Assembly: GCF_052425735.1 (NCBI RefSeq)
Contig: NC_135758.1
Coordinates: 39,432,001-39,496,000, forward strand
Length of the DNA: 64,000 bases
Direction: 5' to 3'
Source: Oculina patagonica
Taxonomy: Eukaryota
Below the pieces are notes generated by a model. It saw only the letters and a program-made list of their open reading frames with translations. It made no database searches and was not told the origin of the DNA. Each line of letters begins with the position of its first letter. Position 1 is the first letter of the stretch. Positions 18,701 to 63,018 of the stretch are shown one piece after another. A program made the translations under genes and the position numbers.

Positions 18701-21700
18701 TGCCAAGTGTAGACTTTCTGAAAAGTGAGTACAGTGGAACCCCGATATAACGATCTTCGATATAACGATATTCCCGATATAACGATGAATATGTTATGTC
18801 CCGGCAATAGTAAAATGTATGGGACGGAACCCCGACATAACGATTCCTCGATATAACGATATAATTTTACTGCCCCCTTGGCATATCGTTATATCGGGGT
18901 TCCACTGTATAAACTTCTTGCTGTTTTCTTTTTTTTATTCATGGACAGTTTACCTTGGTGAGTGTGAAGACAAGTTTCCTAAGGCGTGTGAGGACTGGGC
19001 AGCCCAGCGGTATTGTTTGACATTTAGTGAGCTGATGAAGAGATATTGTAGAAAGGCCTGCAAACTGTGCAGTAAGTTGACACGGATTTTTAAAAACACA
19101 AGAGAAATGAGAGATATCGCCAGTGCTCAATTCTAGACTGAAAAAAATGAAAATTTTATAGCCTGTGTTTTATTTGGTAAATGTTCGTTACAAATAGATC
19201 GATACATTTTTTCAATGAAGGCGTGCTCCACATGCAGCAAGTACGAGTTTTCTAACTAAAGAGGAGGATGTCTTACTTTTGATGATGACATTTCCAGAAG
19301 TTAATTTGATCAGTGTGTTATTGATATTTTGCTTCTGATAAAGCACTTTACTGATAGCAAAGCTTTTCACTGATAGCAACGCTCCAGCAATTTCTTGTCT
19401 TATTTTCAGATCACGTGTTAGCAACGGGTTTTACCTCGTGCGATAAATCCTGCGGAGGAGGAGTCAGACTGCGCATGATCAAAGTCAATAACCGCCAAGT
19501 TTTGCAACGAAGATCTTGCAACGTACAAAGCTGTCCAAGTAAGCTAAGACTAAATTGTCTTATTCATTACATACCGGCCGTTCTGCTTTTAAACCCAGTA
19601 AAACGATAATAAAGCTGCAACAAAACACACTAGTTTTGAATAATAAAAGATAAACGTAGACATGGGATAGTTTAAGCCATGAAAAAGAGAACTTTTTCTT
19701 ACTGATGTACTTGCATATCGCACAGTACTATTGTGGAAAAGCTAAGGCGCTTATAAACCAGGATAATTTTCCTTTAGCCTTGGCATAATTGTATTAACAT
19801 AAATTTCTAACGTAGCATCAATATTAATCATTTCAAAGGAAGGATTACATGTTAGTTACTACATATCGCAGTAACGTTTCATCGCAGAGATTTGCGTCCA
19901 CACATGAGTTCAAATAAAGATATATCTGGACGATATATATTAGTCACGAGAAAATTTGAGACTTAGATTTTGCCCTAAACTTATTCCAGTAATGCATTTT
20001 CTACAAATAATTATTGTTCCTGTTTGTTTTTTGTTTTGGTTTGTTTTACAGTTAATGGAGGTTACACACCTTACTCGAATTGGTCCGAATGTAGCGTGAC
20101 ATGTGGCGAAGGAGTGCGTTACCGACACAGGTCATGCAGCAACCCCAAGCCACAGTTTGGTGGGCGTGACTGCACTCGCTATGGAGCTCCGGTTGATACT
20201 ATGCCATGCGTCAAGGGCTGTAAAGGTAAGTACTTCCATATCAGTTCTTCTCTTGAAAAGAAATATTTCAGCGGATTCAATGTTATATAGCTGACCCTGT
20301 GCTAGTAATGATGAACAAAGAATGTTGATTGAAGTAGAAGGAAAAAAAGTTAACCGGTGAGTAATTGAGCGAACGAGCGAGCGAGCAAGAGACACTTCGC
20401 CGTTCAAAGACTTCACACTATCATCATATTCTACTGCATAAGGACAAAGGAAACAATTGTCAAAGGGAACGATTAAATAATTTAAAATGGGAAAACATTG
20501 TAAGTAACAAATCATGTTCAACAGCTTTTTTTATTGTAGTAAAAGCCATTGTAAAACACTTTTTAAGGAAGAGAAAGTACTCCAAGAGATAGGCATCTGT
20601 GCCGGTATGCTGACTGGCAAAATACTTTTTATTTAGGTTTCAAACCTGGGAAACACCACTCATCTGCCAATGTAGGTAAGTTATTGATAAAAGAAGGCAA
20701 TACACATACATGCAGTTGTCTCGAAGTTGATGCTGTCACTTAGATGCGTTCAGTATTGGAGCACGGACGGTTGACACGAGTTACTTTCTTTGTATGCGTT
20801 GATCAGAGTTTACCCTGTAATGATCTAAACACAGACTTGCTGTTTTTGATTAAATAACTTCAGGAGTCGCCACGATGCAACTTCCAAAGTTGGATTTCAC
20901 ACTTGTCCTGCCTGATAGATACTTTCTACTGTTAGTGTAAGTGTATTCAATTAAGACAGCAATTTTTTTCTTTCAGGATACAAGAATGGAAAACATTACT
21001 CAGACTCCAACTTAAGTATGGTTTGTCTCAATCTAAGCTTTTTAATACAAAAGCTGACTTTTTTAAAATCGATGCATTTGAAAACGGTTAGAATTATTTT
21101 TATGCAGATCCCGAGGAATTTCCTGAGTACAAAGCCGAAGAGTCAAATCCAAAGAACCCGGAACCCGGTTAGTGAGCATATACACCATGTGCCACCGGTA
21201 ATTTTTTGTATAAGCTAATATTTTTTTTAGTTGCGTTAATTTTGTAATTAACAGCAACAATTCCATGCAAAATAACACTGTTGTATGCAATGCAACATGT
21301 GTTGTCTCTTTATAATGACTAGAAGAACTTTTGGGGTCTTGTAACTCAAACCTAAGCGTTATTTTGTAATACTTCCCCGAGCAATTTCCCAAGAATACAG
21401 TTAGCACAGAAGATATCAAAATCCCGTTCATATCCCTCAGTCCAGAAGTGTAAGGAGTTTACAAAATACCCAAATCTGATCTTTGGGTTGGAAACAGTAT
21501 TCTAGAACATAAGATGTCAAACGTACGAGAGAGAAAATGTCAAATATAAGTTGCATGTGTACAGATAGTTAACTTTTAAATATGTGTTTCGTGCATGTGG
21601 TACAAAGTTGGTGAAAGTGATTCTGATATGGAAAACCAAGAAGATGAAGAATCAGGCAGTGCAAATCAGCCGTCTGGTAAGCATGGTTATTGGATCAAAA

Positions 21701-30615: not shown

Positions 30616-33600
30616 ATGCAGTATTCAGCAATTATTGTTTATTGTAAACTATACGCTTTGTTTATGGTGTCAATTTCGAAAGGTGGTAAACAAGATAGCG
30701 AAACAAAAGATCTAACAGGTGGGTAGGCGTGTTTGGTGTCACCTAAGTGATATTACACCAACCTTTATGTCTATGTTAGGTGTTAAATAAAACGAATAAG
30801 TAACTTCGGTTGTTCATTTGGGATCTATAAGGTCTGACAGACCGTCAGATTCTTTGTCATGCACAGACTTTTCCTTTCAACCGTTACTTTTGAAACGGCA
30901 GGGAGAAATAATCACGTGCTTCCCCATTTGATATTTGATCAGCAAGATTAATACACAGTAATGTTAGAAAATATAAAAATATAAAGGCAAATGTATACTG
31001 TTCATGCTTTAGCTCAAAGCAAGTTTCTAAACATTACGATGCAGAGTACTACAAGAAAGTGCAAGATTTTCCTAGTTAATTTTATTGGAAAAGTATCCCG
31101 TGAAGCCATTGTTGTAATGTAAATGATATAATTAGTTATGCCTGTGATCACAATGAAAATTTGGAAGAATGGGTTTATTCTACCATGTTTTATATATTTT
31201 AGTGTGGAACAAACAAATCATTCCTCAATTTGGACGCTTTGTTGCCATTTCATCGATCACTTGACAAACACTAACAATGTTTTCATATTTCCAATAATTC
31301 TCTTTTGAAATAAAAACATTGGTGCCAGATATCAGTCAAAACCACTCAGTTCATTGACTCAGTTGTACGTAAAACACTTAGCTACTCCTCATCATCAGAC
31401 TAATTTTCATAATAAGTTACGGGATTCGCATTTCTAGTTCTATTCCACTCCTTTCTCACACTCCTTTAAGGCCTGTAACTACTCTCCCCTTTCTTTTTTT
31501 TCAAGTGAAAAATGGCTGTGGAAAATCGGCGGGCGCGAATAAAGCGCGCGTCTCGCCCGCAGAGCTCCTGCAGCCATTTTTCCACTTGGCTCTTTTTTTT
31601 TTTTTTTGCTCACGCACGCTCGACGGACTAAGATAAAGAGGAACTGCTTGTAGTCTAATCGCCGAGGTGCCTTCTGATTCAACATATATTTCACCACTGT
31701 CAAGTTTACTAAGGCTTTCGCTTATATTTTTAATTTGCCCAATCAACACAAAATTGGTTTTTGAGATACAGAAGAAGACAAAAACTATACTTCGTCTTTA
31801 ATTTACGCCTCCATATTTTCAGAATAAATATATAGTTATAAAAACATGACGTTTCGGCGACGACATGTCACCATTATCAAATGCAAATTTTACAAAGTAG
31901 AGAACGATATTTATAGAAAAGAAAGTGTAAAACTAAATTACAATAAATGAGGCGTGGAAAACAGAAAAATGTGCATAACTAAGTACAGTCAACTCTCTCT
32001 AAGACGGACACGTTCGGGACCGGCCGTAGCTGTCCGTCTTAGAGAGGTGTCCGCTCTGTAGAGAGTCGAGGTAACATGACACCAGTTATTCTGAGATAAT
32101 GAAGCGAAACAGTTGCACAATGTAACAAACCTTTGCTAACTGCAACAAGACTTAAATAATAAAAGGACCGTATTTGTCTGATAAAGCAAAAATTGAGAGC
32201 TTCTACAAGCTGTAATACTGTAAGTAGAAAATGTCCCCTTTAGTGTTCATATACACGTAAGCAGAAAAGTAATCCGTTAAAGCGTCATTGTTTGTGGTCA
32301 GTAAGCTTGGTATACAGGTATTCTTAGGGCGCCGACTAACTTTGCTTTAGGTCGATACGAAGTTTGGAAGTATTTTCACAAATAAAATTGGATAAAAAAA
32401 ACTTCTCATGTGTACATGTCCGTTAATGATTTCAAAGTGTCCGTTGTCCGTCTTAGAGAGGTGTCCGTTTTATAGGGAGTTTGGTTACAATAAAATGACT
32501 GAAAAACGCCAGGGACCATCACCAGGTTCCCGTCTTATAAAGGTGTCCGTCTTATAGAGGTGTCCGTTAAGAGAGAGTTGACTGTAAACAGTTTCGCTGG
32601 AATGGAGTCCTTTTGAGTGTTCAGGGATGGTTTCTTTTCCTAATTGGGAGCATCTCGTAAATTAGGCACTCAAACTTTCCGCGGCATTTCTTTAGGATGG
32701 CAAATTGGCTGTGAAGGTCGATCGGCTTTTGATTGTGTTGTTTTTGAAGGTGTTTACCAATCACGGAGTATCTGTGCTCCTTAATGCGCAGGTGGAGGTG
32801 GCGGCTAGTGTAGCCAATATAATTCGCATCGCACGAATTACATTTAAATTCATATACACACTGTACTACACTTTGTTGATTTTGCTAGAGCGGGCTTTAT
32901 TTCCGTGAACTTCAAATCTTCTGAGATTTTCTTGCTTGTGAAGACTGGTTGTATTACAATATCGATCTATTTTCTTTCCTAGAATACGTAGCTCTCTGCG
33001 TACGTAGTTGGCTGATTTTTGATCTTTGATTGGCAAGGTGATGCGTACAGGGTTGTCCGCTGGCGCAATACAGTTTTCGTTCTGGCCTTGAGAGGAATGG
33101 AATTTGTTATGGATAAAAAGGCTGGATTCACGGTTATTAGCTTTAATTGTTACAAATAATTTGTGATATTACTAAAAATTCTATTATTTTCAGTAGCAGA
33201 CGGTAAACATGAATTGATTAGGAAGCGGCGAGCATTTGGCAGTACGGAACCACCTTGTAACAGTAAGTAGAACCCGGGGGGGGGGGGGGCACTCAAGGAA
33301 GTTTTATACGGGGAGGCTCCGCCCCAAGGTCCAACCCCTTACCCTTTTATATACCATTTTGACAGAAAAAGCACCCCTTTCGTATACCTTTTATAGAAAA
33401 AAGTTACCCTATTCATATACCTACACGACACAAAATATACTTAAGGAGGCTCGATGTAGTTTTTTTACCCGAAGGGTGGTTGTTTTGAAAATTAAAATTA
33501 TCTAGGAAGCCAATGTCCGATATTTGCCAAAATACACCATAATGATCAAATATGACCAAATTTTAATTTATTTCCCGTCACTTAGTCACAAAGGTTACCA

Positions 33601-36600
33601 TAGCAACGATTGACGTTTTCTTTTGTTCTCAAACAAGCTTGATTTTCTCGAAATCTAGACTGACTCTTGGTGTTTATTTTTTAACATGTTAAAGTTCAGT
33701 AGATTGACTAACTGTTGACGAAATTTTAGAAAAATTTGTAAGAGCGTTTTCAAGTAAATCAAGAATAAAATTTTCAGAAAAACACCATTTTAATATAAAA
33801 TAGGCGCTTTAAAATTGTTTCGTATTATTTGAGCACAGTTACTCTCACTGAAATATAAATACTTACACCATCAAAGACCATTAACTAAAAGCGAAAGACT
33901 TTTTGATTTAATTTGTTAAAATATTTTGACTGCCGATTGTATTCCTACAATCGGATACAAAATACAATACAATACCAATACCAAAAACTTCATTCTTGAT
34001 TTACTCTAAAACGCTCTTACAGATTTTTCTAAAATTTTGTGTACAGGTAGTCAATCTACTATACTTGAACATATCAAAAAATGAATACCAAGAGTCAGTC
34101 TAGATTTCGAGAAAATCAAGCTTGTTTGAGAACAAAAGAAAACGTCAATCGTTGCTATGGTAACCTTTGTGACAAAGTCTCGAGTAAAAAATTAAAATTT
34201 GGTCATATTTGATCATTATGGTGTATTTTGGCAAATATCGGACATTGGCTTCCTAGATAATTTTAATTTTCAAAACAACCACCCTTCGGGTAAAAAAACT
34301 ACATCGAGCCTCCTTAAAACAGGACGTTTTCTTGACATTTTTATGTAGCGCTTAATAAATTAAGACGATACAGCCATAAGTTGCGTCTGTTTAAAATAAT
34401 TAATTTAAAGCCCCTTTTAAATATTTTAATGACAGATTTCCCTACCCTTATATACCTAAACTTGTGAAATCCCTACCCTTTTATATACCTGAAGCCTGAA
34501 AAAGGTACCCCTTTCGGGCGGAGCCTCCCCGTATAGGCAGTATATGGAGTACCCCCCCCCCCCCCGGGAAGTAGAATTGTTATGTGTTACAACAATCCAT
34601 TATCATTCAAGTCAACTTTGGTCTGGTCTCTTTCAGGCTGGTTCTCATATAACCACTCCGATCGTTCATATCGCCTCTGTCACTTTAAAAAGTTTTTCGA
34701 TCGGGACGACTGATATGAGAACATTATACAGACGATCGCTAACGTCTCTGGCGATTGAGGCGATCACGATTGCTTCGATCGCCCGTGTTCTGTCCTTCTA
34801 GCTCTACTTTCAACCTTCTAGCTCTACTTCAATCATAACTGAGAAGATGAGGACGCCACCAGTTTTGCTCTTTCATTGAAGGCTGCCATTGTGTTGGATC
34901 TAGGACTAAAATGATTGTTTTTTTTTCGTAGGCCTTCGCTCACTGAGAACCCCCGATCGCTTCCAATCGCGACGATCGCCTACGATCGTCTCAGGCCTGG
35001 TTCTCATATGATCGCCCCGATCGTTTCTATCGCATCGGTCGTTTGCAAATACTGAGACGATCGTAGGCAATCGAAGCGTTTGGAAGCGATCGGGGGTCAG
35101 GTCTTTTCGAACACCAGACCGCTTTCAATCGCTTCGATCGCCTACGATCGTCTCAGTATTTGCAACGATCAATGCGATAGAAACGATGGGGGTGATCATA
35201 GAAGAACCAGGCTTTATAGTTCAGGACGTCGAAGATGACAACTGTTTACTTGATGCAGTTTTCAAAGAAAAAATGGCGCTAAAACAGGCTGCTTTCAGGT
35301 CACGCTCACTGATTTAAGTTTAAAAAACCTTCTATCAGAAAAAAGTTCCCAACAGTGTTATTTCCCAACCTTTTTACTTATAATATTTGCATCATTGATT
35401 GTTTTATCTTTATTTCAGTGAATAGCATGCCAGCCTCTCTAATTCACGATATTTATCTTCGTTTTATAGTGACCCACGGCGTGTACTTGGAAAGATGGGA
35501 CAGAATAGATTACAAACGAGTCAAGTTTCTGTTGGCGGATCCGCGATATCCAAACCTACCAAGTCTTTCATTGTGCGTTCCAACGTTTGAGCAACCGTCC
35601 AAGTGGGCAGACTTCTTTGGTAGCCGCTTGAGGACGTATTTTGTTCCATTTCAGACCGGAAACCATTACTTCTTTCTTTGTAAGGAGTTACACGTTAACA
35701 TGTAGAAGTAAAAAAACAGTGAAGAACTGAGGTCTTTTATTTTGTTCTTTAGATCGAGGTTCAAATTTGAAGTTTTCTTGCCAGGTTGCCCTGAAGAAAC
35801 AATTAAGACAAAATTCAATAGAAAATCAAGTAATATTAATTTTAGTTGGACAAAAATCGATTTACATTTTAATCCTACTAACAACAATTTTGTCGTTGTT
35901 TGGTGTTGATAGAAATGATTTCTTTTAATAATATATTTGAAACAGTAACACAGAAGTTTGCAATGAGATGTAAATAATTTTGGTTCATATTTTTGTCCAA
36001 TTTATACTCGAAAATAATTGTATTCAAAAACATTCATTTTAGCATCCGATGCTGGTAGCGAACTGTATATCAGCACAAATGAGAAACCTGACACCAAGAC
36101 GCAAATAAGTGGCGTGGATGGAGGATTTGCCACTTATCCATATGAGTATGACAGGTATGGTATCTACCTTGCTAAGTTTACGATGTGTGCCCTTGAATTC
36201 GTTCAAAAGTTATAAATCATCAAAAATGAAATTTTATTGAAAAATTAGCCTTTCAATTTATAAATAATTCTTCGAAAAGAGGAACGAAAATTCCAAGCGC
36301 AAACGGCTGGAAACGCTCGAACGACTTGTTGTTAGGTATGGCACGCCACCTAACGCCTCAGAAGCTTCTAATTCAAACTTGAAAAATGAATGTGTGCCAA
36401 ATTTCGCTCCACTACAATCCTCCTCGCGAGAAAAATGTCACGTGAACTATATTATTTTTACAGATAAAAGTCTAAGACCAAAGGACGAATTGGCCGTTTT
36501 TATACTAGAGACGAATTACCCGTCTAGACGAGCTTCGACAAAATTTTTGTCACTTGTCTGGTTATGCGTCTCTAGTATAAAAACTGGCACAAGACGAGTT

Positions 36601-39600
36601 ACCCGTCTAGACGGGCTTCCTTTCGTAATGCGTCTTTCAAGATGCATTTCGAAAAGTAGCTCGTCTAGACGGGTAACTCGTCTTGTGCCCGTTTTTATAT
36701 TAGAGACGCATAACCAGACACGTAACAAACTTTTTGCCGAAGCTCGTCCAGACGGGTAACTCGTCTCTAGTATATTTACCATAACTTTATATGAAGTTGC
36801 AACCAAACTGTAACTCACTTGTAGTTTTCCAACTTTTATGTGAAAAAGGCATTCACTGACCGGGAATATCTTTTGTAAAAAGGAAGGACAACATACCACT
36901 AAGCTGCCTTCGTTGTTTACACTTCCAAACCCTCCTGGTATTTCCCAGTAAGTGTTACAACGCAGGCTCGGAAAATGAAATTCCGAGTGCTCCCAACAGG
37001 GTCGAACCTGAGACTTTCCGATTCGTACTTCGGACTCTAGCACTGTGCTACTCGAGGACTCGTGGTGGCTAGGCCATCAATAGATTTATTGTTCCATTTC
37101 TTAGTCAGACAATCAGAGCGTTTACGGTCAGTCGAGTTATATCATTTTTCAAATTATCTGATTATCCGAAATCCTGCGAATGTAGATCTTCTTGTCAACA
37201 TGTTACCTTATGTATCCTTCAACCTGGTAATTATTCGCCCTGTTTTTCAGCGAGGGTGATAGTAATAAGCCAAGTGGGTACATGTATTAGGTTTCCTCGC
37301 CGTTTACAAATCTTTCTACGTAAGAAGTTATGTAGTAAAATTGTGTTTTACTTCATAGCAGACTTAAATAAAAAAAAATAAAAGTTTGAAATTCTATGTT
37401 CGGCACTATTTGGACAGTAGTGTGCCCTTTGATGCTTACCCCTTTATTTACAGTTTTGTTAGTAGTTCGCTTGACTTTATAACGGATTGGTTAATTGATC
37501 AATAAAAAGCCAATTAATGATGTATTTGTTTATATAGTCTATGTATATTATAGGTATACTACTCAAAAATCTCTGCCGATCTATTTAAAGAAAGGCAAGT
37601 ATTACTACATGGAGGCTGTATTTAAAGACGATCATCAAAATGATCACCTGGAAGCTGCAGTACAGACACCAGACGGGACATTCTACAAAGTGATACCATC
37701 CAAGTTCCTATGGACAACATTGCCTACTCCTCCAGGTAAGTCTGAGTTGGTGACCTACTCCTCCAGGTAGGTCTGAGTTGATCTCACCTTATTTAGAAGC
37801 GTTGGACTTATGTGCCCAAGGGCACGAAGAGGATTGAGTGAGTAAGTGGTTTTGTGGAGGGAGGAAAACCGAAGAAAGTGGAGAAAAACCCTCTGAGAAA
37901 GGCTGAGAACCAACAACATACTCAACCCACATTGCCACGGGCCACTGGGCCATCCCTGCTACCCGAGGTAGTGGACGCAGTGTGGTGGACTCTAGAGAGG
38001 CACTTTATTCCCATATCCTTTACCCTATAAGACCAAATTCCCGCCAAAATCCTGTTTCGAATTCTGTCATGTAGATGGTGTATATTCTATTACTTCTTAT
38101 TAAATTCTTTTCTCGACATGACAACTTGAATTGAACCGACAGAATGGAATTTAGAGAACCACAATTTCAACTGAACCAACAGAAGGGACTGCAAAACATC
38201 GTAAACACAACTGAACAGAAATTGGAGCAACAGAAGAAAAATTGATGCTGCTCCGATTTTTATGTGTTTGTAACACATACTTAGTCAAAACATTGATATC
38301 AGAAAATTTTGGAGGATATTGGAGACTAGGTGTAATTACGTAAAAGGGATTATGGAAGAGGCGCAATAACTGTTGAAGCTCACATCTTTTCCGTTCAATT
38401 TCAGAGAAGAATGCCACTTACCAGGCCATTTTGCTTAAAGTAGCAGCACATGCAGGTGCAAGAGCTGGTTTATCGTTTGGAGCAAAGTGGGCACAGAAAA
38501 GTGGAGCCAAAGCGGGAGCAAAGGCTGGTGCCTTGGCAGGAATGGAGGCTGGAGCATCAGCGGGAGCTAATGCAGGCCTAAACGCTGCGATAAAGATGAC
38601 AACAAAAACGCTGGAAGATGCATTCAACAATCTTCATGGTGACCTGATACACAAATTTAAGATTAATCTAAAGAATGGAAGCGTGATCTCTGTAACTGGT
38701 CCTGGATTGGGTGGAGGAGCTGGAGCTGGTGGCGCTTCTGCGGCCTCTGGAGCTGCTGGAGCTGCTGCTGCTGCTGCTGCCATTGGTGCTGTTGAAACTG
38801 CCGGGACGGCGGGTACCGCTGGGACTGCGGGGACAGCCGGGACTTCGGGAACTGGTGGGACTGCTGGGGCTTCTGGGACTTCCGGAATAGGAGGGGCTGG
38901 GGGAGGCGGAGGAGCCGGAGGAGCCGAAGGAGCCGAAGGAGCCGGAGCCGGAAGTACTGGGGGAGGTGGAACTACTAATGGAGGCACGATGGTTGGAGCT
39001 GGTACAGGTGGAAGTGCAGTGGGAGGGACAACTGGTGGTGTCAGTTCTGGAGGAGTGGCAAGCGGTGCTTCCGTCTCAACCGCTGGAGCTGGAGGAAGCT
39101 CCCAAATAACATCAGCTGCCGGATCAACAAGCAGCGGCGGCGTTGGTGGAGGTGCCGGAATAGGTGGCGCCGGCGGAGGAGGAGAGGAAGACAATACTTC
39201 TCCTACCAGACGATTGACTATTATTCCAAGACAAGGGGAAGACCCACAGGCAGTTGCTAGGAAGATGGTTTGGGCTGGGGGAGCTGCAAGCGCGAGTAAG
39301 CTAATAGCGGATTCATTAAGTACCCTTCACAATAGATCCTCTTCACCGAGATTATGCTAATAGTTTTGTCATTTCCTTGCGGTTTTCGTTTATTTTTTGC
39401 ACACCTTACACGGTTTCACTTACAAATTAGACTACGAGTTCGAACTTTTAATCGTTTTCTAGTCAGCAATAAATGAAGAGCTCCGAATCACCCATCGAAT
39501 TCAACAAAAACCGAAATCGAGCATTGCAAATATTTTTTTAGCATAAACCAGTGGCTGTTTTTTGACAACGAAGAATATCTATGAAACAGATTTCTTGACG

Positions 39601-51700: not shown

Positions 51701-54700
51701 GGGTAGCGATTTGCGATCAAGGAAAACGAAGGCCGATTTCGCCTAAGTTATGGGTCTCGAAAAAAGCTTGATTAATTGAATGAGTTTGTATTTGAAAGAC
51801 ACCGTGCACGTGGAAATTTAAGATTAAACCGCCAAAACAAAGCACAGAAGACGTGTTTTTTATTTTTTTTTTAATTTCAACAGATTGTCCATATAGGGTT
51901 TGCTTCTTACAAAACTGTGTTACTTTATGTAGGCTGCTATACCCGAAGACACATACACAATAAAATTAAACCATTTTTCAGAATGTATACAATGAATTTC
52001 GATTGAGTATCCTAAACGCAGGAATCTCTCGGTCTATTTGCCATCGACGTCGGAAAATGGCCGTCCGGCACATCATGCACACTCCACCAAACAGTAATTA
52101 AAAGCTCTTTGCCACTACTGGATCGTCAATAAAAGGCTCTTTGAACTGCAGACGTGTCTAATACGGCAAACAGGTTTAAGTTGCGCGATTGTAAAGTTTA
52201 CAGATACTTACTGCTTGTTACACGCCGTGTTGTCCATAGAAACATTGAGGGAATGACTTTGTAAAATTGTCCGTCGGGTGTCTGTAGTCCAACTTCCAAG
52301 TGATCCTCCTGATGATCGTCTTTCATTATAGCTTCCATGTAGTATTGCTTGCCTTTCATTAGGTAAACTGGGAGAGATTTTTGAGTGGTGTATCTATAAA
52401 TAAATATATATGGAATAATATGAATCAAGAGAAGTCATACCACACCACACCTTACGATACCAAACCATGTCATGACATACCATACCTTATTTTTTATATA
52501 ACAAAAGTTTAAGACAATTTGCAAATAGAAGTGGGTATTTGCTATATTTAAGCAAAAGTATAGACGTATAGCTTTCTTCACATGTAAGAATATATCCAAT
52601 CAGTATCTGCAGAACAACGACCCAGCCCATCACAGCACGAGAACTCAAATGGTTTCCAAATTCGTATAGGAACTTTTTTTTTAGTCTAGACAGCAGTTTG
52701 GGTTTTGTTCCGTTACAGTTGCCTTTCGACAACTTCATAGAAATGCAAGCCAAACGAATTTTTTTGAGCTAAACCTAAAGAATACGATAACGATATAAAA
52801 ATAAAAAAAATCATTACTCGAGGGTGGAGTGAAGTGAAAGCGAAGGCAGACTTCCCTCGAGCTTAAAGTCGACACCGAACACCTAAGATGTAGATTACAA
52901 AACATTTAACGCAAAAGACTTCCTTATTGATTCTGGCGATAGTTGTTAATTGAAAAAGTAAATCTGGTCTAACCTGTCGTACTCATATTGACCAGAAGGA
53001 AATCCTCCATCTATTTCACTAATCATCGTCTTCGTGTCTGGCTTGTCATTTTTGCTAAGGAACAGTTCGCTACCTGCATTTGATGCTGCAAAAATAAATG
53101 ATATGAGTTTTATTCAAACTGTTGCTCTTGAAAGTGTTGGAAAAGGTATTATTCAGAACATGTACATTGGTGTCTAGGGCTTTCAAAAAATGCTCGAGAT
53201 GTCCCAGAAAGTTGCTCGAAATTTCTTTAAAAATTGCTCCAGATTCCAAAGAGTTGCTCGAAAGTTGCTCCAAAAATTCCAAAACGTTGCCTTTAAATAT
53301 AAAATTCTCCAAATATATGCTAATTTCCCTTTAATTTGAAGGTAAGATTGTTAACATTTTTATGCATCTTTACTGGAACAGAAACATCTAAATAACATTT
53401 TTAAGGCCAAAATGTGTTAAATTACAAGGATTTCTTTCACTAAACAAAAATCGTGAAGATACCGATGACGTTATGTTTGCTGATGGGCTTTTGATGCTGA
53501 ATGATCCGAAAGTTGAAGCATCCTCTGATCTTCCTCGAAAATCTTCGGAAAATTTCGATGTTGTCATTTAGATCCAAAAAGTAATTTCTTTGTAAGCATT
53601 AAGTTTAACATAGCGAGTATTTGGCAAAACTTTATAAAATAAACTTAGCTCAGCCACAGTCCTTTTAATACATGTACATTGCGACACTTCACAAATAGAA
53701 ATCATGCATGCATTTAAGTTACACTAAGATACTATGCCATCAACTGCTATAAAAACGGTCCAGTGATCATGCACTTACAAAGAAAGAAGTAGTGGTTTCC
53801 CGTCTGTAATGGAACGAAATACGTCCTTAGACGAGTACCAAAGAAGTCTCCCCAGTTCGAAGGTTGCTCAAATGTTGGAACACATGTTGTATAACTTGGA
53901 AGATTTGGATATCGGGGATCACTCAATAGAAACTTGACACGCTTGTAATCTATTCTGTCCCATCTCTCCAAGTACACGCCACGTTCCACTAGAAAAAAAA
54001 AAGGTGAAGTAATGAAGAACTGGACCAAAATGACAAATGCGAAATCCTCAAGTGGCTCGATACACACCAAATTTCATTTTATTACGTAGTATAGTACTTT
54101 CTACCAAACGAAACGAGTATTTTTGTGCGGTCGTTTTGATTTGTTTTATTGGTATTTGAGCTAGCTTAAAAAAAAAGTTATTTAAGAAAAAGGATTGCGC
54201 GTAATAGCTAATAGCTTACAAACCTGTAGTCCAACACTAGGAACAGTATGACAATAGCGTAAAAAATATAAATTGGAATTATACAATTAGATTTTTAAAG
54301 CTAATTAAAAATTAAGACTTATGTTCAAGTCATTAAATGTAAGGCCTACTATTTATAAATATGGCTTTTCCCACACAATTGCAAAATTACTGAGGATAAC
54401 TAAAGTTACATTAGATAGCCTTTACTCACAGGGACAAGATGCATCCCTGGTACCAAATGTGCGTCGCTGTCTAATCAGTTCATGTTTATCTGCTGGTATA
54501 GAAAAGCAAAGATCGTTAATTATATCTCAAACGGTTTTCAACAAGATAACTATTTTCTCCTCTGAATTATTCAGCATGGCTGCCCGATAAAGAGTATAAC
54601 TGCAAATTTGTTCCAGATTTTGCCATTGATAGTAGAAAGGTGTGACGTTGAAGGTAGATTGGGCCTATATTGAGGAAAGATATGGTTTCCATTACTATGA

Positions 54701-56088
54701 CTGTAGTGCATTGGACAACGGAAGGAAAACGAAAAAGAGGAAGAACAAAACAACATGGCGAAACAGAGTACAGAAAGACCTCCTCCATCTGTGTTGAAGC
54801 TCAATCGAGGACCGCAAAAAAATACGCAGACCGTGCGTTCTTTTGGCTAGCGTGATGAGCAGAAAGAATGTCTGCGAAGGAGGATAGCAAACTTGATTGG
54901 CATGGAAAAGCGTTGTAGCCGCCCTTTGCGCCAGCCTGCGCGATGATGATGAGTTGACTGGGTGAGTGAGCGAGTGAGTGAGTGAGTGAGTGGAAAGGTG
55001 TGCTTGATATTCACCATTACTGAAGACTTAAAGTTATGCATTCCTCGTGTTTCCCTTTTGTAAATTCAAGCAGGATTTGAAGAAAATGACCCTCAGACAT
55101 TTGACTAATTATAATTTTGTTTCCTTGGACATATTACCACAAGTAACCTACTGATGCCGATGAAGAATTTTTTTCGTGCTTTGATATCTGTAGATATATA
55201 ACAATTTTGACATTCGTTGGCGTTTGGAGTAATTGTTTACTGCTGCCTAATATGTATTGTCGTGACAACCCTGTTAAAATATATTTTATTGCTCTTTCTA
55301 TCTTTCAAACAAGGCGTTTCTGCATAAAGAGGTCTCGCATGTTCATTTCCACTCCAATGTGTCATTTATCTACAAGCCACTGGGATTTTGAAGTATGTTA
55401 AGATTGACTCTTGAGTCTTCTTGACTGTTGATACCGTGTCATGCATGTCTGATAGATATCCATGAATTCCGTGCCATAAATAACGCCACCGTTAAAATTA
55501 CATGGTGAAAAATAATTTCACTTATATATGTTTTTAGTTCTTACATTTAACATTTTACTAGTATATTATACATGTTTTTCAGTTTCAATTAAATCTGGTC
55601 AAAATCCTTCAAAAGCTGGGTGATTATCTATCGTCTTGAGACGAGCGAGAATTTGGCAGGAATTTACCTGTCTAATTTCTAACATTAGTTTTATCTGTAA
55701 AACAGTACCATCAATTGACTGAATTGAAAATTGAAAAAGCTTAACCAATATAACGATGTATTTCATTTCCTGAAGCTGGAGAACTTATTACTGTAATACA
55801 CTTTATCGATTTAACAATCTATATTGAATTTGACTAATTGCATTTAAACCGTGAAGAGATAAAAATCCGTCTAGGCCATAAGCGCTTTGTTTCCATCTGC
55901 TAAAAACCTCTTATCGCTAACAAAAAAAATAAACGAATAAACGTACGCGTTAAAAACATTTGTTGATTAGATTGAAGAACCATACCTGCCGTTCCTCTCA
56001 TGTTGGTGGTAACTTTACCACCTTCGGAAAATGGCGCCATAAACAAAGCGTAAACTGCACAGAACACGGCGGTGATTAAATACTTCAT
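45741..56088 (-). CDS. Paralogue B: same PA14 / Gly-rich / AbfB / polyproline / Cys-rich architecture (12 exons, ~1023 aa)
   Basis: Exons 55986-56088, 53779-53988, 52974-53085, 52212-52393, 50731-51633, 49770-50042, 48750-49211, 47731-48006, 47215-47406, 46955-47134, 46402-46467 (VHYHYHY), 45741-45853 (CPSMCTESEECYSTCPSNCCKR...stop). First four exons are 103/210/112/182 nt, as in A and C. Confidence 0.9.
54690..54860 (+). mobile_element. Possible RTE-clade LINE 3' remnant
   Basis: Translates to VHWTTEGKRKRGRTK, resembling the W.PEGKRKRGRPK C-terminal motif of RTE ORFs; degenerate. Confidence 0.45.
54960..54992. repeat. (GAGT)n microsatellite
   Basis: gtgagtgagcgagtgagtgagtgagtgagtg. Confidence 0.8.
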
Positions 56089-57776
56089 ATTTAGAGCTGT
56101 GAAAGGAAGCTCCACCACGATAATAGCGCTTTTAGTGATACATTTAAGTGGTTCAGAGATGCCACTTTGTTAAAACAGAAGTCCATTAAGAAAGAAAAGC
56201 CACCTGCTGTGAGGAACGATCGATGAAGGTTCACAACGGGTAATCTGACTAAATTTATTTTTCTGTCGATCAACTGTTTTGCAGGGCCTCACTGAATAAC
56301 ACCTTTGGTGATGTGAGCTCCCTGGGTAAAGAACATTATTTTTAAAATAATTAACAAACAGTACATTATAATATCAGTGACGTCTCTTAACTCAAATAAT
56401 TAACAAACACTGCGTTATATTAGTGACGTCTCTTAACTCCTTTGCAAGTTTACACAATTGGGTAACTCCAGCAATCGTTAGCGATCAAATAGAAGGCAGC
56501 CCATGCCTAAAACATGTACAGTTGTGCAAAATGGTGGTAATAGATTTTGTAACTTTTATTCAAAACTATATCTGGGCATAAAAGAAATATTGTCACAGTG
56601 TAGGTACACTTAACATAGCTACTCGAATAAATTTGTTTGAACACCGGTGAAGTACACAGCTGCTTTGCTGGAATGAAGAATTCTATACTGTCACTCACAG
56701 GTTGGAATCTTTTTAATTCGCATGGCGGCTGATCGTTATGAATTTCTTTTAATGTTTTTTTTTTTTATTCATCAAAGAAACATACCGTGCAGATCTAGAA
56801 TTTTAACGATTGGGTTATTATTGTCCTGTCACAGACAATGTAATGTTGTTGTAAGGAGAAAAGAGAGTTGATCACTCTTAACGAACCTATATTTTCCCAT
56901 TATATATAGAGAATTGTTTTGTACCTTTAAAGATTGTTTTAGTGGTCAGTTAATTCAGTTCCAGTATGACAGTAAACCCACTAGGATAGTACAAACAATT
57001 GAAAAATTAGATCAACGAAGAGCATGTACATCCCTCCTCTGACACTTGACAAGTTGACATTGGCGGTAATGAAACTAAACCCATCATTCAGAGACAAATA
57101 TGGTAAAAAAATGCAAAAGCTGTCTGTCTTGACAAAATCGACGGCTGTAATGGCAAAGACAACAATTGATTCATAGCATTTTGAGTCGATATTACAAAAC
57201 TTAGCAATAACCCACGATCTCTTCTTACCAATGTAACCTTAGGAACAAAAGAAACCAACTAAGATTAATGATCCTTTATCCCCACAGAGGGCAATAAAAA
57301 TTGACAACAATCGTGTAAAGATTATCACATCACCTTACCGCATTACCTTGAACAAGAGGCCCCACCAACAGTGTGCTCGAACACCATCTGTGCCAAAGAA
57401 AACATCCTCGAGGAACCAACGGTCGCGAAGGCCTGAAAAGGAGAAAATCAAGTGGAGGACTACAATGAAGAACTGTAAGAACTGTCGTTTAACCTGTCTC
57501 CTTTCTTTTGACACCTTATACATGCAGCATGAAAAAAAAGAAGTCGCTCAAACATTCTTTGTTGAATAAATTTTCCACAGAGATAAAACAGTACAGTACC
57601 CAATTTTTCTATGTCAAAAATAGTTCAAGAGTTACGTGACCAGTTGTGAAGACATTTTTCGATTGTTCCTTGCAGCAGGTGGCCTTTCTGTTCCATTCAT
57701 GGACAGGATCACAAGAAAGTGCATCAGTTCCTAAATTACAAGTTACAGATTCTTGCCCAGCCACTAACCACTTATA

Positions 57777-60700
57777 ATGAAGTATTCAACAGTTGTTGTT
57801 TACTGGAAACTATACGCTTTGTTTATGGTGTCATTTTCAAAAGGTGGTAAGCAAAACAACAAATGGAAAGATCTGGGAGGTAGGTGTTACTTTTGCCACA
57901 AAGTTATTCTTAAAATGCACCATCTTTTTTTAGAGGTGAAGAGTTCTAAAATCTTTCTAACATCATATTTTGAACAAGGATACTTTCTGAAATTATGAGA
58001 ACATAGTAAATTCATAATCTGAAACCTTGTTTGTGTCAACTTTGGTGAGGCTTGTCTTTCACAGGTGCCATTCACCGCCCACTCAAGTTTAAGATTATGA
58101 AAGAAAAGGAAAACAATAAGTCTTCTTGCAAGGAACATGTTCTTGCCCATTTAAACACGAAAGCCAGCTAGCTAATTTTCAAGCATAGCCTTTAGTTAAA
58201 GTCAGAAGTTTTATGTCTCAATCGTGTTGGTCATTAATCATAATTATTTTACACTGCCTGCCTGTCGAACTGAAAAGTCAAAAGACAGCTATTGCGTTCA
58301 CTAGCTTATTGCAAGGAAATAAACCAGAGTCGGATGAGCTCAAATGTTTTAACCCTCCTCGGTTTGGTTTTCTATTACTGTAATTCTGATAAAAGGGTAT
58401 AAAAAATGTTCAGTTTAATTTTTGTACAATGTTTCGCCAATAAACAGGATCAGCTGAATTCAAAATTGTTACTATAGCGACGTCAAAAGAGGTCGAAACA
58501 TACCTTTTGACATTTTATTCAAGGAAAATAACTTGACAACTACTCGTTTAAAGTTTTACTTTCAGCAATACTGTTTTCCTTCCATGATTGATCCCTTTTC
58601 AAAGTGGTGGGAAAATTGCAATCTGGGTAATTCAACCCACTTTTTAAGGTGCAAGGAACAATTGGTTTACTTCGATTGCACGAGAAGGTCATTAATAGAA
58701 AAGTCATAGAGCAATTTTTTTCTTTACCAGCCCAGCCCTAACCAACAAGACAAGCATGTGACTTGCTTCAAACCTGATGTAATGATGCTAATAACGTCTT
58801 TCTTTATAAATCTATATGCTCAAGGCAAACGTAGGTTGTCTAGGTGGCGGCGAACATTTGGTAGTAAGGAGGCACCTTGCAACAGTGAGTACAAGTATTT
58901 TTTGGTATATATCTAGTTTTCTCTGACCTGATTGTGATTGTTGGTTGTTTTAATTGGAACCTAAGTTCGCAATGACAATATAAATGACAATATATTCCCG
59001 CCTTTTTCTCACTGTTGACTTGGAAGACATTTAGTTCTGCAGATAAGGAGCTCATCAAAACGGCGTTTTTCATTTAGTATGATATTATGGTGTTTAATTT
59101 GTATGATAATTATGAAAAGATTAGGTGTCTCGCATGATGCGATGTTTTATTTCCCCACGGCAGCTATACTCATTTATACTTGTATACTCATTTAAATTTG
59201 TTTTATCGAAGTGAGTCCATTTTACGTATAAAACCACGCACGATAATCAAAAACAACATAATATAAATACCGTATTTTCTCGATTAGACGCCCCCGGCGT
59301 TTATTACAAACTTGACCTGGTGGACCCGGCGTTTATTTGACTTCTGCAGTTTTTCGAGCCTGGTTTTCATTTAGAAACGGTTTTTATTCGCTGTTTTTGA
59401 CAAAAATATGTCTGGCTGATATAGATACAACTTATCATACCTTAAATAAATACCTTAGGGGCCTATTTTCAACTTCACCTTGGAGACCCGGCGTTTATTC
59501 GGTACCCGGCGTTTAATCGAGGAAATACGGTAAATATGCTGAAATATAATCCTTCAATTATATTTTTACCTTTAATTTAGTCACGGTAGGTATTTTGCCA
59601 TTTTACCATGTTCGACGGCAACAATTTATCTTAATTCAACCGAAAATTTTCTCATTATTATAGAATCTTCTCTTTAATTGAGTATGTTGTGAATATCTAT
59701 TCGAGCAATATAGCAAATTAATTATTTAGTCCCAATCTTTAATATTAGACAAAAAAACGTGTATACTAATATAATTAATGTACCACTAAGGCCTAATTTG
59801 TGATGTATATGTTTTGAAATATAATAAATAACACAGTGACTACTTCATGAAGCAAAATCTCGTACCCCTTGTCTGCTGGTACATACCCGATATAACTATT
59901 CATTTCAGTGCACATCTTACACTTCTTTACAAAAAAAATGAAAAAAAGTACAGTAGCCACAACAACGATTTTTATCAATCTTTAATCTATTTTGCCACAT
60001 TCTGTTTTTTCTTCATCTATTTCAGTGGCCCATGGCGTATACTTGGAAAAATGGGACAGAATAGATTATAAGCGAGTCAAGTTTCTACTGGCGGATCCAC
60101 GATATCCAAATCTTCCAAGTTTCACAAAATGTGTTCCAACGTTTGAACAGCCTTCAAAATGGGGAGACTTCTTTGGTACTCGTCTAAGGACGTATTTTGT
60201 TCCATTCCAGACAGGAAACCACTATTTCTTCCTCTGTAAGACATAGTTTTTTTCTTTGAATACACGTTTAAAATTACCAGAGGAGGTGATTATGCTAAGA
60301 GGAAATACTAGACCGAGTTTTGAGAGTTTAATTGAGTATTTCATTCAAATCAGAATTTTAAGTGCGTGAATTAGTTTAGTGAGTGAATTTGTAATTGCCG
60401 TGTAATTCACTTAGACATCTTCTGGGGCGAAATCACGATTTTTATGGAAGTAGGATGAGTATGAACTGTAATGTAAAAACTTTATTTAAACACGGGAAAC
60501 CATCAGTTACAATAAGCTCAAGTATTAAAGAAACTAAAACTAAAACTGCTTTACATGATTGCCGTGCGGGAATCCGATACGTCAGCTACCTTCTTGATAA
60601 TTTTCTTAAAATTATTAACTGATGCGGCATTTTTAAGACATTTGGGCATGTTATTCCAGAGCATAGCGCCGCTGTAAGAAAAGCTTCGTTTTAAATAGTT

Positions 60701-63018
60701 GGTATTTGGTTTGGGTAGCGTCAGCTTTCCCTCAGAGTCTCTCAAGTTATAAACAGAGTGACGCTGAGAGAAAAGGTTTTGTAGGTAATCTGGGGTAAGT
60801 CCATTCATGGTTTTATACATTATTAAGGCTTTCTGTTTCTTTCTTCGAGAAAATAGCCTCTCCCAGTCGAGTGTGGAAAGGAGGTGGTTTAAACTCGTAT
60901 CAAAAGGTGATTTTGTTATAACTCTGGCTGCACGGTTCTGTAATTTTTGAAGCTTGTCACTTAAGTAACCACTCATACAGTCCCAAACGGGGCTGTATGA
61001 GCGCACAAAACGTGCAAATCCAAAGGGTCTGGGGGTACACTCTTTAAGAACTATGCCTTCAAGAAAAAAAGAACAAATTATCATGGAACCCTCATTCTGG
61101 ATAGGTTTAATTTTTATTTTGACATCCCATTCTTAGCATCAGATGCTGGAAGCGAACTGTATATCAGCACAAATGAGAAACCAAAGACGAAGACGATGAT
61201 CAGTTATGTAGATGGAGGATTTGCCACTTACCCATATGAGTACGACAGGTAAGAAGAGTCTCTGATGACAACTGCTTGCTTTATTGACCGACCGACCGAT
61301 CGATCGATCGACTGATTGTGACTGACCGACCGACCGACCAACCGACCGACTGCCTGTCTGACTGACTGACTGACCGCCCGCTGTAGCTCTCCGTACCCTC
61401 TGTGTAAAGTCTGCCTGTATCTCTGACTGATTAATTTCCTGTTAAATTCCTTGATTAAATTTTTCACAAAGCTATTTCGTGGGCTCTTTTCGGTTGGCCC
61501 GCCAGATTTCATGGGAAAGTATTTTGCGTTTTAAATCAGGCGTTATAATTAATTCGGACGTCGCGTCTGCTGACAGGCTTGGTGTCTGAATTTTTCATTA
61601 TTTCTTCATTGATCAGCTTATCATAATCAAACTCTCTCTTTCCGTAGGTTTACGAACCAAAAATCTCTGCCGATTTATCTACAACAAGGCAAATATTACT
61701 ACATGGAGGCTATAATGAAAGACGATCATCAAAACGACCACCTGGAAGTTGCTTTAGAGACGCCAGACAAAACATTTTACAAAGTGATTCCCTCAAAGTT
61801 CCTATGGACAACATTACCTACACCTCCCGGTATGAAGACAGTACTGATTTAGGACAGGCCAAAGGGGCATTTATACAAAATTTATGGTACTTCTGTTTGG
61901 CAGAAAAATTCTATCGCCTTTCGTCGTTAATGTATATTTTATAAAAAAAAAAAAAGGAATAAACAAACACTTGCGTCGAAAACAGGGTTTACGGTGATTC
62001 GTTTAATGTAATTATTTGATACAAATTAAAACCTCAGCTCAGTTAATTAAGTACAAAATGAAAGCAACTACACAGAAGAAGACAACTGAACGGAAACTGA
62101 TATAGTTTGTAACTTCTCAGTGTCATGATTTTCTATTCTCTTTCCTATTTCTAGCACAAAATGCCACTTATCAAGCCATTTTACTTAAAATAGCGGCACG
62201 AGCTGGTGCAAAAGCCGGTTCATCATTTGGCGCAAGGTGGGCGATGAAAAGTGGAGCGCAAGCAGGAGCAAAGGCTGGTGCCTTGGCAGGAATGGAGGCT
62301 GGGACATCGGCAGGAGCTAAAGCCGGAGCGAAAGCTGCTATCGTAATGACAACGAAAACACTTCAAGACGCTTTTAACAGCTTTCATGGAGACAGCTTGC
62401 ACCAATTTAAGATTACCATTAAGAATGGAAGCGTTGTAGACGTAACTGGTCCTGGGATAGGAGAAACACCTACTGTAGCTGGAGCGGCAGGTGGTGGTGG
62501 TGGTGGTGGCGGTGGCGGTGGTGGTGGTGGCGGCGGTGGCGGTGGGGCTGGTACTGCTGGGACAGCAGGGACTGCAGGCACTGCAGGAACGGCTGGAACA
62601 GTAGGGACTCCGGGGGGAGGAGGAGCTGGAGGAGGTGGTGGTGGAGGCGGTGGAGGCGGGGGAGGAGCCGGAACTGGAAGCGCTACAGGAGGTGGTGGAT
62701 CAGCAGCTGGAGGATCAACAGGCGGAACGGCTGCCGGTGGAGTTGCAGCAGGAGGTGCAGCCGCTGCAGGTGCTGGAGCGGGTGCTGGAGGAGCCACAGG
62801 CGGTGCTTCTGTTTCTGTGTCTGGAACTTCTCAGGTTACTTCATCTACCAGCGGTGGTATTGCGGGAGGTGGGAGCACTGGGGTGAGTGGCGCTGGTGGT
62901 GGTGGTGAATCGTCCTCGTTTACTCCGATTAGGGAATTGGTTTATATTCCAAAACCAGGCGAAGATGCTCAGGCTCTTGCACGGTCACTGGTCTGGAGAG
63001 TAGGAGGTGCAACAAAAA
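57777..63018 (+). CDS. Paralogue C: first five exons (signal peptide, PA14, Gly-zipper/Gly-rich); remainder expected beyond the window
   Basis: Exons 57777-57879, 60026-60235, 61137-61248, 61648-61829, 62155-63018; sizes 103/210/112/182 nt match A and B, and the frame is open. Confidence 0.88.
59270..59530. mobile_element. Tc1/mariner (pogo-like) MITE
   Basis: TA|CCGTATTTTCTCGATTAGACGCC ... GGCGTTTAATCGAGGAAATACGG|TA; internal CCCGGCGTTTATT repeats. Confidence 0.85.
60460..60995 (-). mobile_element. 5'-truncated L2/CR1-clade LINE (C-terminal end of ORF2 plus 3' UTR) in an intron of paralogue C
   Basis: SPVWDCMSGYLSDKLQKLQNRAARVIT...LLSTLDW...LIMYKTMNGLTPDYL...YNLR...LPKPNTNYLKRSFSYSGAMLWNNMP; AATAAA near the 3' end. 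Confidence 0.88.
61283..61380. repeat. Compound (GACC/GATC/GACT)n microsatellite
   Basis: gaccgaccgaccgatcgatcgatcgactg...gactgactgactgacc. Confidence 0.8.

Follow-up and report, generated by a model that had tools for sequence, protein, structure and literature searches.

A tandem gene family of Oculina patagonica encoding candidate cnidocyst proteins with lectin-type modules and a minicollagen-type cysteine-rich end

Cnidocysts are a textbook evolutionary novelty at the level of the organelle. To our knowledge, the list of their structural parts is almost wholly derived from Hydra (minicollagens, NOWA, Cnidoin, spinalin and nematogalectin), with anthozoan capsules far less charted. Minicollagens carry a cysteine-rich domain (CRD) at both ends, with polyproline, (Gly-X-Y)12-16 and polyproline between them. 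NOWA carries an SCP/CAP domain and a C-type lectin domain, Cnidoin has CRDs and spinalin is Gly/His-rich. We know of no report of the CRD outside cnidocyst proteins. The window analysed here is a stretch of 64,000 nt from Oculina patagonica (RefSeq assembly GCF_052425735.1, contig NC_135758.1, positions 39,432,001 to 39,496,000 of the forward strand) and holds three paralogous genes, A, B and C, whose predicted secreted products combine lectin-type modules with a CRD-type C-terminus. The family to which they belong is likely, but unproven, to supply building blocks of the stinging capsules of corals and sea anemones, and is undescribed so far. The window has about 39 % GC, is eukaryotic and lies at 39.43-39.50 Mb on a 49-Mb contig of a 529-Mb assembly; positions below are those of the window.

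Like NOWA, the family is predicted to be secreted and places a lectin-type module ahead of minicollagen-type CRDs. NOWA CRDs are also the best PDB sequence matches of its C-terminus, and two divergent paralogues, G and H, end in five canonical CRDs arranged much like those of NOWA. Unlike NOWA, the family has PA14, AbfB, a VHL-like beta-sandwich, an Ala/Gly zipper, a Gly-rich spacer and the motif HYHYHYH, and the close paralogues A to F have one CRD with a second loop of 5-6 residues. A Pfam search of the full-length homologues gave AbfB and PA14 only, with no CAP and no Lectin_C domain, and the family is therefore not a NOWA but follows an analogous logic. With minicollagens it shares a signal peptide, a propeptide with a basic end, a six-Cys CRD at the C-terminus with polyproline beside it, and a short stretch of Gly-X-Y. 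It differs in having no N-terminal CRD, in being about seven times longer and composed mostly of globular lectin-type domains, and in a Gly-X-Y run of about nine proline-free Gly-Thr-Ala triplets lying about 500 residues from the CRD. Membership of the minicollagens was rejected because the CRD is single and C-terminal and there is no proline-bearing collagen core.

Cnidoin and spinalin also contain long Gly-rich low-complexity stretches and are set apart in having no lectin-type domains. According to the authors of a tentacle study, their transcripts are missing from the Galaxea data (PMC7430897). Nematogalectin resembles the family as a nematocyst tubule protein that joins a lectin domain to a Gly-X-Y stretch and is raised in Galaxea sweeper tentacles, and differs in its galactose-binding lectin fold and in having no CRD. 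The PA14 adhesins (Flo5, Epa, Cea1 and RTX-adhesin PA14) share the fold of the N-terminal domain (Z 9-11), but those are microbial cell-wall adhesins. On these comparisons the genes are best filed as a new family in the class of CRD-bearing cnidocyst proteins.

Gene structure, transcription and selection

An all-against-all BLAST of stop-to-stop open reading frames (ORFs) in the window paired 11-12 exon-sized ORFs between members of A, B and C (E 1e-10 to 1e-49). The paired ORFs are colinear and the series occurs three times, for A on the + strand from about 30.6 kb, for B on the - strand from about 56.1 to 45.7 kb and for C on the + strand from about 57.8 kb. Splice sites were chosen as GT-AG pairs that kept the frame and coincided with the edges of paralogue similarity. 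In the resulting models all splice sites are GT-AG, the coding frames are uninterrupted and all introns except one are in phase 1, as is usual for extracellular modules that have been shuffled. A first-pass annotation of the window had proposed these three paralogues in the same orientations, and its outer limits proved exact, 30616 being the ATG of A and 63018 the donor of exon 6 of C; each module that it listed for A and B was recovered once the exons were spliced (Table 1).

Contigs from four public runs presumed to be RNA were mapped on 38405-44242. These contigs cover the exons of A, skip its introns and splice exons 6-12 as modelled (runs X1, X2 and X4, from three studies). GT..AG joints were found at 39295/40088, 40357/41096, 42221/42747, 43058/43545 and 43607/44055, and contig pieces split at 41548/41956. 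The joint at exon 7 set its acceptor at 40088, giving a protein of 1026 aa. The two joints that flank the HYHYHY exon (43058/43545 and 43607/44055) occur in three runs, so the HYHYHY exon and the Cys-rich exon, whose connection the first-pass annotation had marked for checking, are joined to the upstream exons. Gene A is transcribed and spliced as modelled, with exons 1-5 of A and the whole of B and C modelled from homology.

The ratio of nonsynonymous to synonymous divergence (dN/dS) was 0.20 for A-B and 0.22 for both A-C and B-C, with dS of 0.9-1.5. The three genes are old duplicates under purifying selection, a mode of selection that had been proposed at first pass.

Table 1. Positions of genes A, B and C and of the modules of A in the window
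Feature	Position	Strand	Remarks
Gene A	30616-44242	+	12 exons, 1026 aa
Gene A exons 1-6	30616-30685, 33200-33262, 35470-35679, 36043-36154, 37554-37735, 38405-39295	+	
Gene A exons 7-12	40088-40357, 41096-41548, 41955-42221, 42747-43058, 43545-43607, 44055-44242	+	
A exon 1, predicted signal peptide	30616-30685	+	MQYSAIIVYCKLYALFMVSISKG; hydrophobic N-terminus shared by A, B and C
A exon 2, putative short propeptide	33200-33262	+	RKRR end, furin-type dibasic site
A exons 3-5, PA14 domain (accepted on a fold model)	35470-37735	+	
A exon 6, 5' part	38407-38709	+	N-glycosylation sequon, Ala/Gly zipper, short conserved segment ending VTGPG
A exon 6, middle, Gly-rich low-complexity spacer	38710-39207	+	166 aa; G 40 %, A 23 %, T 13 %, S 11 %
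A end of exon 6, exon 7 and first half of exon 8, AbfB (CBM42-type) region	39208-41340	+	
A second half of exon 8, Pro-rich linker	41341-41548	+	GQPLPHPPHL and CIPVCPAG, kept in all scleractinian homologues
A exon 9, modelled disulfide-bridged beta-sandwich	41955-42221	+	88 aa; prealbumin-like/pVHL-beta-like fold
A exon 10, polyproline-rich stretch	42747-43058	+	104 aa; P 40 %, A 16 %, S 16 %; both flanking joints in RNA
A exon 11, HYHYHY micro-exon	43545-43607	+	motif 43559-43576
A exon 12, putative variant minicollagen-type CRD, then KR, acidic tail and stop	44055-44242	+	CPSICSEAVPCLPTCPERCC at 44057-44116
Gene B	56088-45741	-	12 exons, 968 aa; 60 % identity to A
Gene B exons 1-6	56088-56019, 54489-54430, 53988-53779, 53085-52974, 52393-52212, 51633-50731	-	
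Gene B exons 7-12	50042-49770, 49211-48750, 48006-47731, 47134-46955, 46467-46402, 45853-45741	-	
Gene B HYHYHY	46433-46450	-	
Gene B putative CRD	45792-45851	-	
Gene C, first 6 exons	57777-63018	+	at least 499 aa up to exon 6 donor 63018; runs past window end
Gene C exons 1-6	57777-57846, 58825-58884, 60026-60235, 61137-61248, 61648-61829, 62155-63018	+	

The C-terminal block, the relatives and expression in Galaxea tentacles

When the 33 aa that precede the C-terminal tail of A were compared with 177,635 PDB sequences, the top four matches were all CRDs, two from NOWA (2hm6 and 2hm4) and two from minicollagens (1sop and 1sp7), with an alignment that places the six Cys and a two-residue insertion in loop 2. 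The E-values (0.06-2.1) are weak because the motif spans just 20 residues, and the argument for its identity is the specificity of the match list. The Cys spacing is C3-C5-C3-C3-CC in A, B, C and F and C3-C6-C3-C3-CC in D and E, compared with the canonical C3-C3-C3-C3-CC. The close paralogues A to F all keep six Cys and three of the four canonical spacings, with a 2-3 residue insertion in loop 2, and in all six the motif is followed by K or KR. In a six-frame translation of the window the six-Cys pattern occurred twice (in A and B), compared with 0.0 times in 20 shuffles. Judged by its sequence, the six-Cys motif of A is probably a minicollagen/NOWA-type CRD with a two-residue insertion. The first-pass annotation had been right to see a CRD-type motif with six Cys, while the regular CxxxCxxxCxxxCxxxCC spacing that it named as a hallmark of nematocyst wall proteins has to be replaced here by C3-C5-C3-C3-CC.

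Canonical CRDs occur nearby. The divergent paralogues G and H lie about 58-72 kb and 78-95 kb past the window end. Each has exons for PA14, AbfB and the sandwich and then, in the same orientation, C-x3-C-x3-C-x3-C-x3-CC repeats of canonical spacing, five per gene, with four sharing one exon. In both predicted genes the domain and CRD exons were grouped by position and strand. Against the PDB, the CRD array of G matched NOWA CRDs only, and without gaps.

Upstream of the Cys motif, the polyproline stretch is 39-40 % Pro in A and B, and HYHYHY sits alone on an exon of 63-66 nt in both genes. The extended motif (S/T)(V/L/I)HYHYHYH is retained in most coral homologues and in all Nematostella homologues, and a few copies show minor variants. 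Amyloid fibrils are reported to form by self-assembly of synthetic HYHYHYH peptides (review PMC9656882).

Full-length homologues, which share the module order, HYHYHYH and the C3-C5-C3-C3-CC spacing, were found in the stony corals Acropora (four species), Montipora, Stylophora, Pocillopora and Desmophyllum and in the sea anemones Exaiptasia and Nematostella (LOC5503099, LOC116610670 and LOC116603955). Proteins A to C have 52-69 % identity to homologues from both major coral clades, which places the window in a stony coral. Members identified to taxon are all hexacorals (stony corals and sea anemones), a range that is a lower bound because low-complexity words swamped the word-indexed protein searches, which returned 7-10 proteins. 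Two further Nematostella genes, both RefSeq models, have AbfB, the 88-aa sandwich and a canonical CRD end: LOC116607202 has an AbfB-like module, the sandwich, PA14, two fibronectin type II domains and three canonical CRDs, while LOC5506570 has AbfB, the sandwich, thrombospondin type 1, fibronectin type II and one canonical CRD. They differ from the full-length homologues in their domain order, in the added fibronectin type II and thrombospondin type 1 domains and in having neither zipper nor HYHYHYH. All of these are entered as 'uncharacterized' in RefSeq, and the full-length homologues as 'PA14 domain-containing protein' in UniProt. A literature search found no paper on the family and no name for it, and none of twelve accession numbers was found in open papers, which agrees with the earlier statement that it matches no named family.

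These relatives bear on the idea that the proteins belong to the skeletal organic matrix and are made by calicoblasts. Several skeletal matrix proteins are, like these, secreted, of low complexity, acidic-tailed and encoded in tandem arrays. However, the same architecture is found in Nematostella and Exaiptasia, the Galaxea member is expressed in tentacles (PMC7430897) and the search of open papers brought up no family accession. This reading is highly improbable and was rejected because the family is present in anemones that have no skeleton.

Expression data were available for Galaxea fascicularis, in which the transcript group TRINITY_DN93093_c3_g1 has a signal peptide at 1-23 (SignalP 'YES' in the published table), PA14 at 101-204 and AbfB at 557-590; its best match is A. 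digitifera LOC107339429 (PMC7430897), the gene of family member P0065. It was 29.6-fold higher in sweeper than in catch tentacles (77-156 versus 1-5 fragments per million, adjusted P value 0), a result on which the authors did not comment (PMC7430897). In the same table NOWA was 6.6-fold higher in sweepers; nematogalectin was also raised, and the authors inferred that nematocyst formation is ongoing there (PMC7430897). About 50 % of the capsules of sweepers are large microbasic b-mastigophores, and about 80 % of those of catch tentacles are spirocysts (PMC7430897). Since the family member is raised together with NOWA and nematogalectin in sweepers and is low in the spirocyst-rich catch tentacles, the family tracks nematocyst structural genes and not spirocyst abundance, as read from bulk tissue and one Galaxea transcript group.

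From this evidence it is reasonably probable that genes of the A to H type encode secreted structural proteins of the cnidocyst, most likely of the nematocyst, that follow a NOWA-like logic and are integrated through their C-terminal block. We favour this reading because of the CRD match, the adjoining paralogues with CRD arrays and the co-variation with NOWA in Galaxea; because polyproline immediately precedes the CRD, as it does in minicollagens, and a dibasic propeptide comes after the signal peptide; because the Nematostella relatives join the same modules to canonical CRDs, and the family occurs in the skeleton-less anemones Nematostella and Exaiptasia; because the genes are transcribed, spliced and under purifying selection; and because synthetic HYHYHYH peptides are reported to form amyloid fibrils. 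The nematocyst component proposed in the first-pass annotation is partly supported, in that the architecture is real and expressed, the motif is of CRD type and the Galaxea member rises with NOWA. Its option of a spirocyst component is disfavoured.

Spirocysts are adhesive capsules restricted to Hexacorallia. A spirocyst-specific component would agree with the hexacoral identity of the members assigned to taxon, and lectin-type modules would suit an adhesive tubule. The hexacoral range is, however, a lower bound from incomplete searches, and catch tentacles with about 80 % spirocysts express the Galaxea member 30-fold less than sweepers. Because of this low expression the option was downgraded and is considered improbable.

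A product of gland or mucous cells is the more serious competitor, if still clearly less likely than a structural nematocyst protein. The family would then be a secreted adhesive, or a lectin of mucus or extracellular matrix, with PA14 and AbfB binding glycans on prey, microbes or substrate or in the mucus of the animal itself, with the Gly- and Pro-rich stretches as mucin-like spacers and with the Cys motif forming ordinary intermolecular disulfides. This would be consistent with microbial adhesins, for which PA14 is typical, being the top fold matches, with the enrichment of the Galaxea member in mucocyte-rich sweepers, and with the family not being found in the available portions of cnidocyte data sets. 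The Cys motif, however, specifically matches nematocyst CRDs, the adjoining paralogues and the Nematostella relatives have canonical CRD arrays, and the Galaxea enrichment parallels that of NOWA and nematogalectin.

Several observations weigh against a structural nematocyst protein. The CRD E-values are weak (0.06-2) and the Cys spacing is non-canonical; PA14 scores under the Pfam cut-off, and the fold search relied on a model with a mean confidence of just 53 (next section). The dibasic propeptide is absent from the Nematostella members. The Galaxea signal comes from bulk tissue in one study and one transcript group, at a resolution coarser than cell type or organelle; mucous cells are far more numerous in sweeper than in catch tentacles (PMC7430897), so that the enrichment also fits a gland-cell product. 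No family member appears in the available part of the supplementary tables of Nematostella cnidocyte studies. Nor was one found in the accessible text and supplements of Sunagar 2018, Babonis 2023, the Stylophora atlas, the Hydractinia nematocyst proteome, the Fimbriaphyllia tissue transcriptomes and two 2025-26 Nematostella cnidocyte preprints.

Lectin-type modules, linkers and the wider array

Cleavage of the propeptide is predicted at its basic end, which reads RKRR in A, RQRR in B and RWRR in C; the same propeptide motif is present in the Stylophora, Montipora and Acropora homologues. For the PA14 domain that follows, the Pfam profile PF07691 gave 15.9-23.9 bits with eight full-length homologues (E 4e-5 to 0.012), under its cut-off of 24. 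An AlphaFold (AF2) model of residues 44-335 of the Stylophora homologue had a mean predicted local distance difference test (pLDDT) of 53, with 60-80 in the core. In a fold search with this model, most of the 11 best solved matches carried a PA14 annotation or were N-terminal domains of binary-toxin binding components (Z 8.8-11.7), including Cea1A, Flo5A, Epa6A and RTX-adhesin PA14 as well as C2-II, Vip1 and Vip4. The PA14 fold was accepted despite the low confidence of the model, and the PA14 assignment made from the sequence at first pass is upheld by fold match but not by Pfam, where the score falls just under the gathering cut-off.

The toxin matches raise the possibility of a content protein, a glycan-targeting factor released on discharge in aggression or prey binding, with PA14 serving as in the bacterial binding components. 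The Galaxea member is strongly raised in aggressive sweepers along with toxins such as phospholipase A2 (PMC7430897), and the fold matches include the PA14 domains of C2-II, Vip1 and Vip4. The match covers a generic PA14 domain only, however. The proteins have no pore-forming or enzymatic module, and polyproline, the CRD and a 170-aa Gly-rich spacer are traits of insoluble structural components. A content protein is thus unlikely, and a structural role in the nematocyst remains the preferred reading.

The Ala/Gly zipper has Gly or Ala at each fourth residue (GxxxG) across about 44 residues, and 23 Ala/Gly positions are invariant from Nematostella to corals. Pfam gave no match for it. It was modelled as two long helices (pLDDT 30-50), and a three-copy complex prediction scored 0.02 with an uncertain fold, which speaks neither for nor against self-association. 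The pattern can also be read as the all-Ala face of a beta strand, so that either helix packing or a silk-like sheet may be formed. A protein-atlas label of SseC for the zipper (score 0.82) was a weak lead and was dropped. The Gly-rich spacer is 166-169 aa long and 40-54 % Gly in A and B, and differs in length and sequence among paralogues. In A it holds the (Gly-Thr-Ala)n run, about nine triplets at approximately 38803-38946. Its composition suggests a flexible or elastic linker and not a collagen helix.

The AbfB assignment at first pass was sound. Pfam PF05270 matched exon 7 of A alone (E 9e-8) and all full-length homologues (32.7-46.9 bits, cut-off 22.8), over approximately profile positions 28-121 of 137, and in a Pfam scan of single exons of the window it was the sole match. 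A beta-trefoil fold is expected from membership of this family. Between AbfB and the sandwich, a half-CRD-like motif, LP(S/V)CIPVCPAG, preceded by GQPLPHPPHL (41341-41450 in A and 48860-48960 in B), occurs in all stony-coral members and not in the Nematostella members.

What had been noted as a 90-aa domain of no recognised type is a real domain of 88 aa. It has no Pfam match at E<=1, and an exhaustive HMMER scan of 1.84 billion proteins gave 41 matches. An AlphaFold model built on 32 aligned sequences has eight strands, two conserved Cys and a pLDDT of 94.6. Among solved structures the pVHL beta domain matches best (Z 9.0, root-mean-square deviation 2.6 Å over 80 residues); transthyretin-like, CnaB and CBM20/25 starch-binding modules follow at Z 5-7, a gap of about two Z units. 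In the AlphaFold database, Nematostella A7SM84 was first (TM 0.91), followed by VHL-beta proteins. From this model the domain is confidently placed as a prealbumin-like sandwich outside Pfam. The label Transglut_N (protein-atlas score 0.85) was again a weak lead and was dropped.

The cluster is larger than the window. A whole-genome search with three exons found further copies directly downstream, and a scan of 110 kb past the window end extended the array to at least eight genes in about 130 kb, reaching about 95 kb past the window. The cluster of three described at first pass is therefore correct for the window, which shows part of the array. Gene C is completed past the window by AbfB, the sandwich, the HYHYHYH exon (extended coordinate 67676, about 3.7 kb past the window end) and a C3-C5-C3-C3-CC exon (68373, about 4.4 kb past it). 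The close paralogues D, E and F lie downstream of C and bring the close set to six. An extra sandwich-domain exon about 105 kb past the window end hints at a ninth gene. In the ENA assembly ERZ25072724, zipper, sandwich and HYHYH exons occur in the same order, and another zipper exon lies 9 kb downstream; the family is therefore arranged in tandem in other genomes too.

A separate gene candidate lies upstream of A, at 13264-20290 on the + strand. Four exons appear to belong to it: one is AbfB-like (13264-13569, 36-46 % identity to exon 7 of B and A), the next codes for 478 aa of low complexity (17027-18463), the third has a ShK-toxin-like set of six Cys (18819-19136) and the fourth a thrombospondin type 1 domain (20024-20290). 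The layout is reminiscent of Nematostella LOC5506570, and inside the window no CRD was found for this candidate. Repeats were seen in two introns of A. Intron 2 of A (33441-34317) contains a 334-nt inverted repeat, 93 % complementary with a loop of 209 nt, which is probably a foldback element or resembles a miniature inverted-repeat transposable element, and intron 4 of A (36501-36774) has a second hairpin repeat of 136 nt. A 177-aa ORF in intron 3 of C (60551-61084, - strand) by eye resembles the C-terminal part of a non-long terminal repeat retrotransposon polymerase.

A possible assembly pathway and its significance

As structural nematocyst proteins, the family members could act as follows; from their architecture we infer capsule location, cleavage, cross-linking, ligand binding and elasticity. 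The signal peptide would route the protein to the post-Golgi capsule vesicle of the developing stinging cell, where the short propeptide would be cut off at RxRR and the acidic tail may be cut off at KR after the CRD. The block of polyproline, HYHYHYH and CRD would anchor the protein in the minicollagen/NOWA polymer through exchange of disulfides, with the invariant His/Tyr strand supplying a pH- or metal-sensitive beta-strand contact. PA14, AbfB and the VHL-like sandwich would bind glycans or proline/hydroxyproline-rich partners of the wall or tubule, and the Gly-rich spacer of about 170 aa together with the Ala/Gly zipper would form a flexible link, possibly elastic or silk-like.

A bolder and doubtful proposal is that the HYHYHYH strand and the pVHL-beta-like sandwich are two new devices of capsule assembly. 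HYHYHYH has the same sequence as the self-assembling synthetic peptides and could be a natural cross-beta clasp, switched by pH or metal, beside the disulfide-exchanging CRD. pVHL recognises hydroxyproline, and by analogy the sandwich could bind minicollagen stretches rich in proline or hydroxyproline. If true, clasp and sandwich would give hexacoral capsule walls a non-covalent assembly step not known from Hydra.

As cnidocyst proteins, the family would add a second lectin-plus-CRD solution alongside that of NOWA. It would also yield candidate markers of nematocyst type, for example for the large b-mastigophores of sweepers, and would supply a natural HYHYHYH motif for self-assembling materials. 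The orthologues in Nematostella make the capsule hypothesis directly testable.

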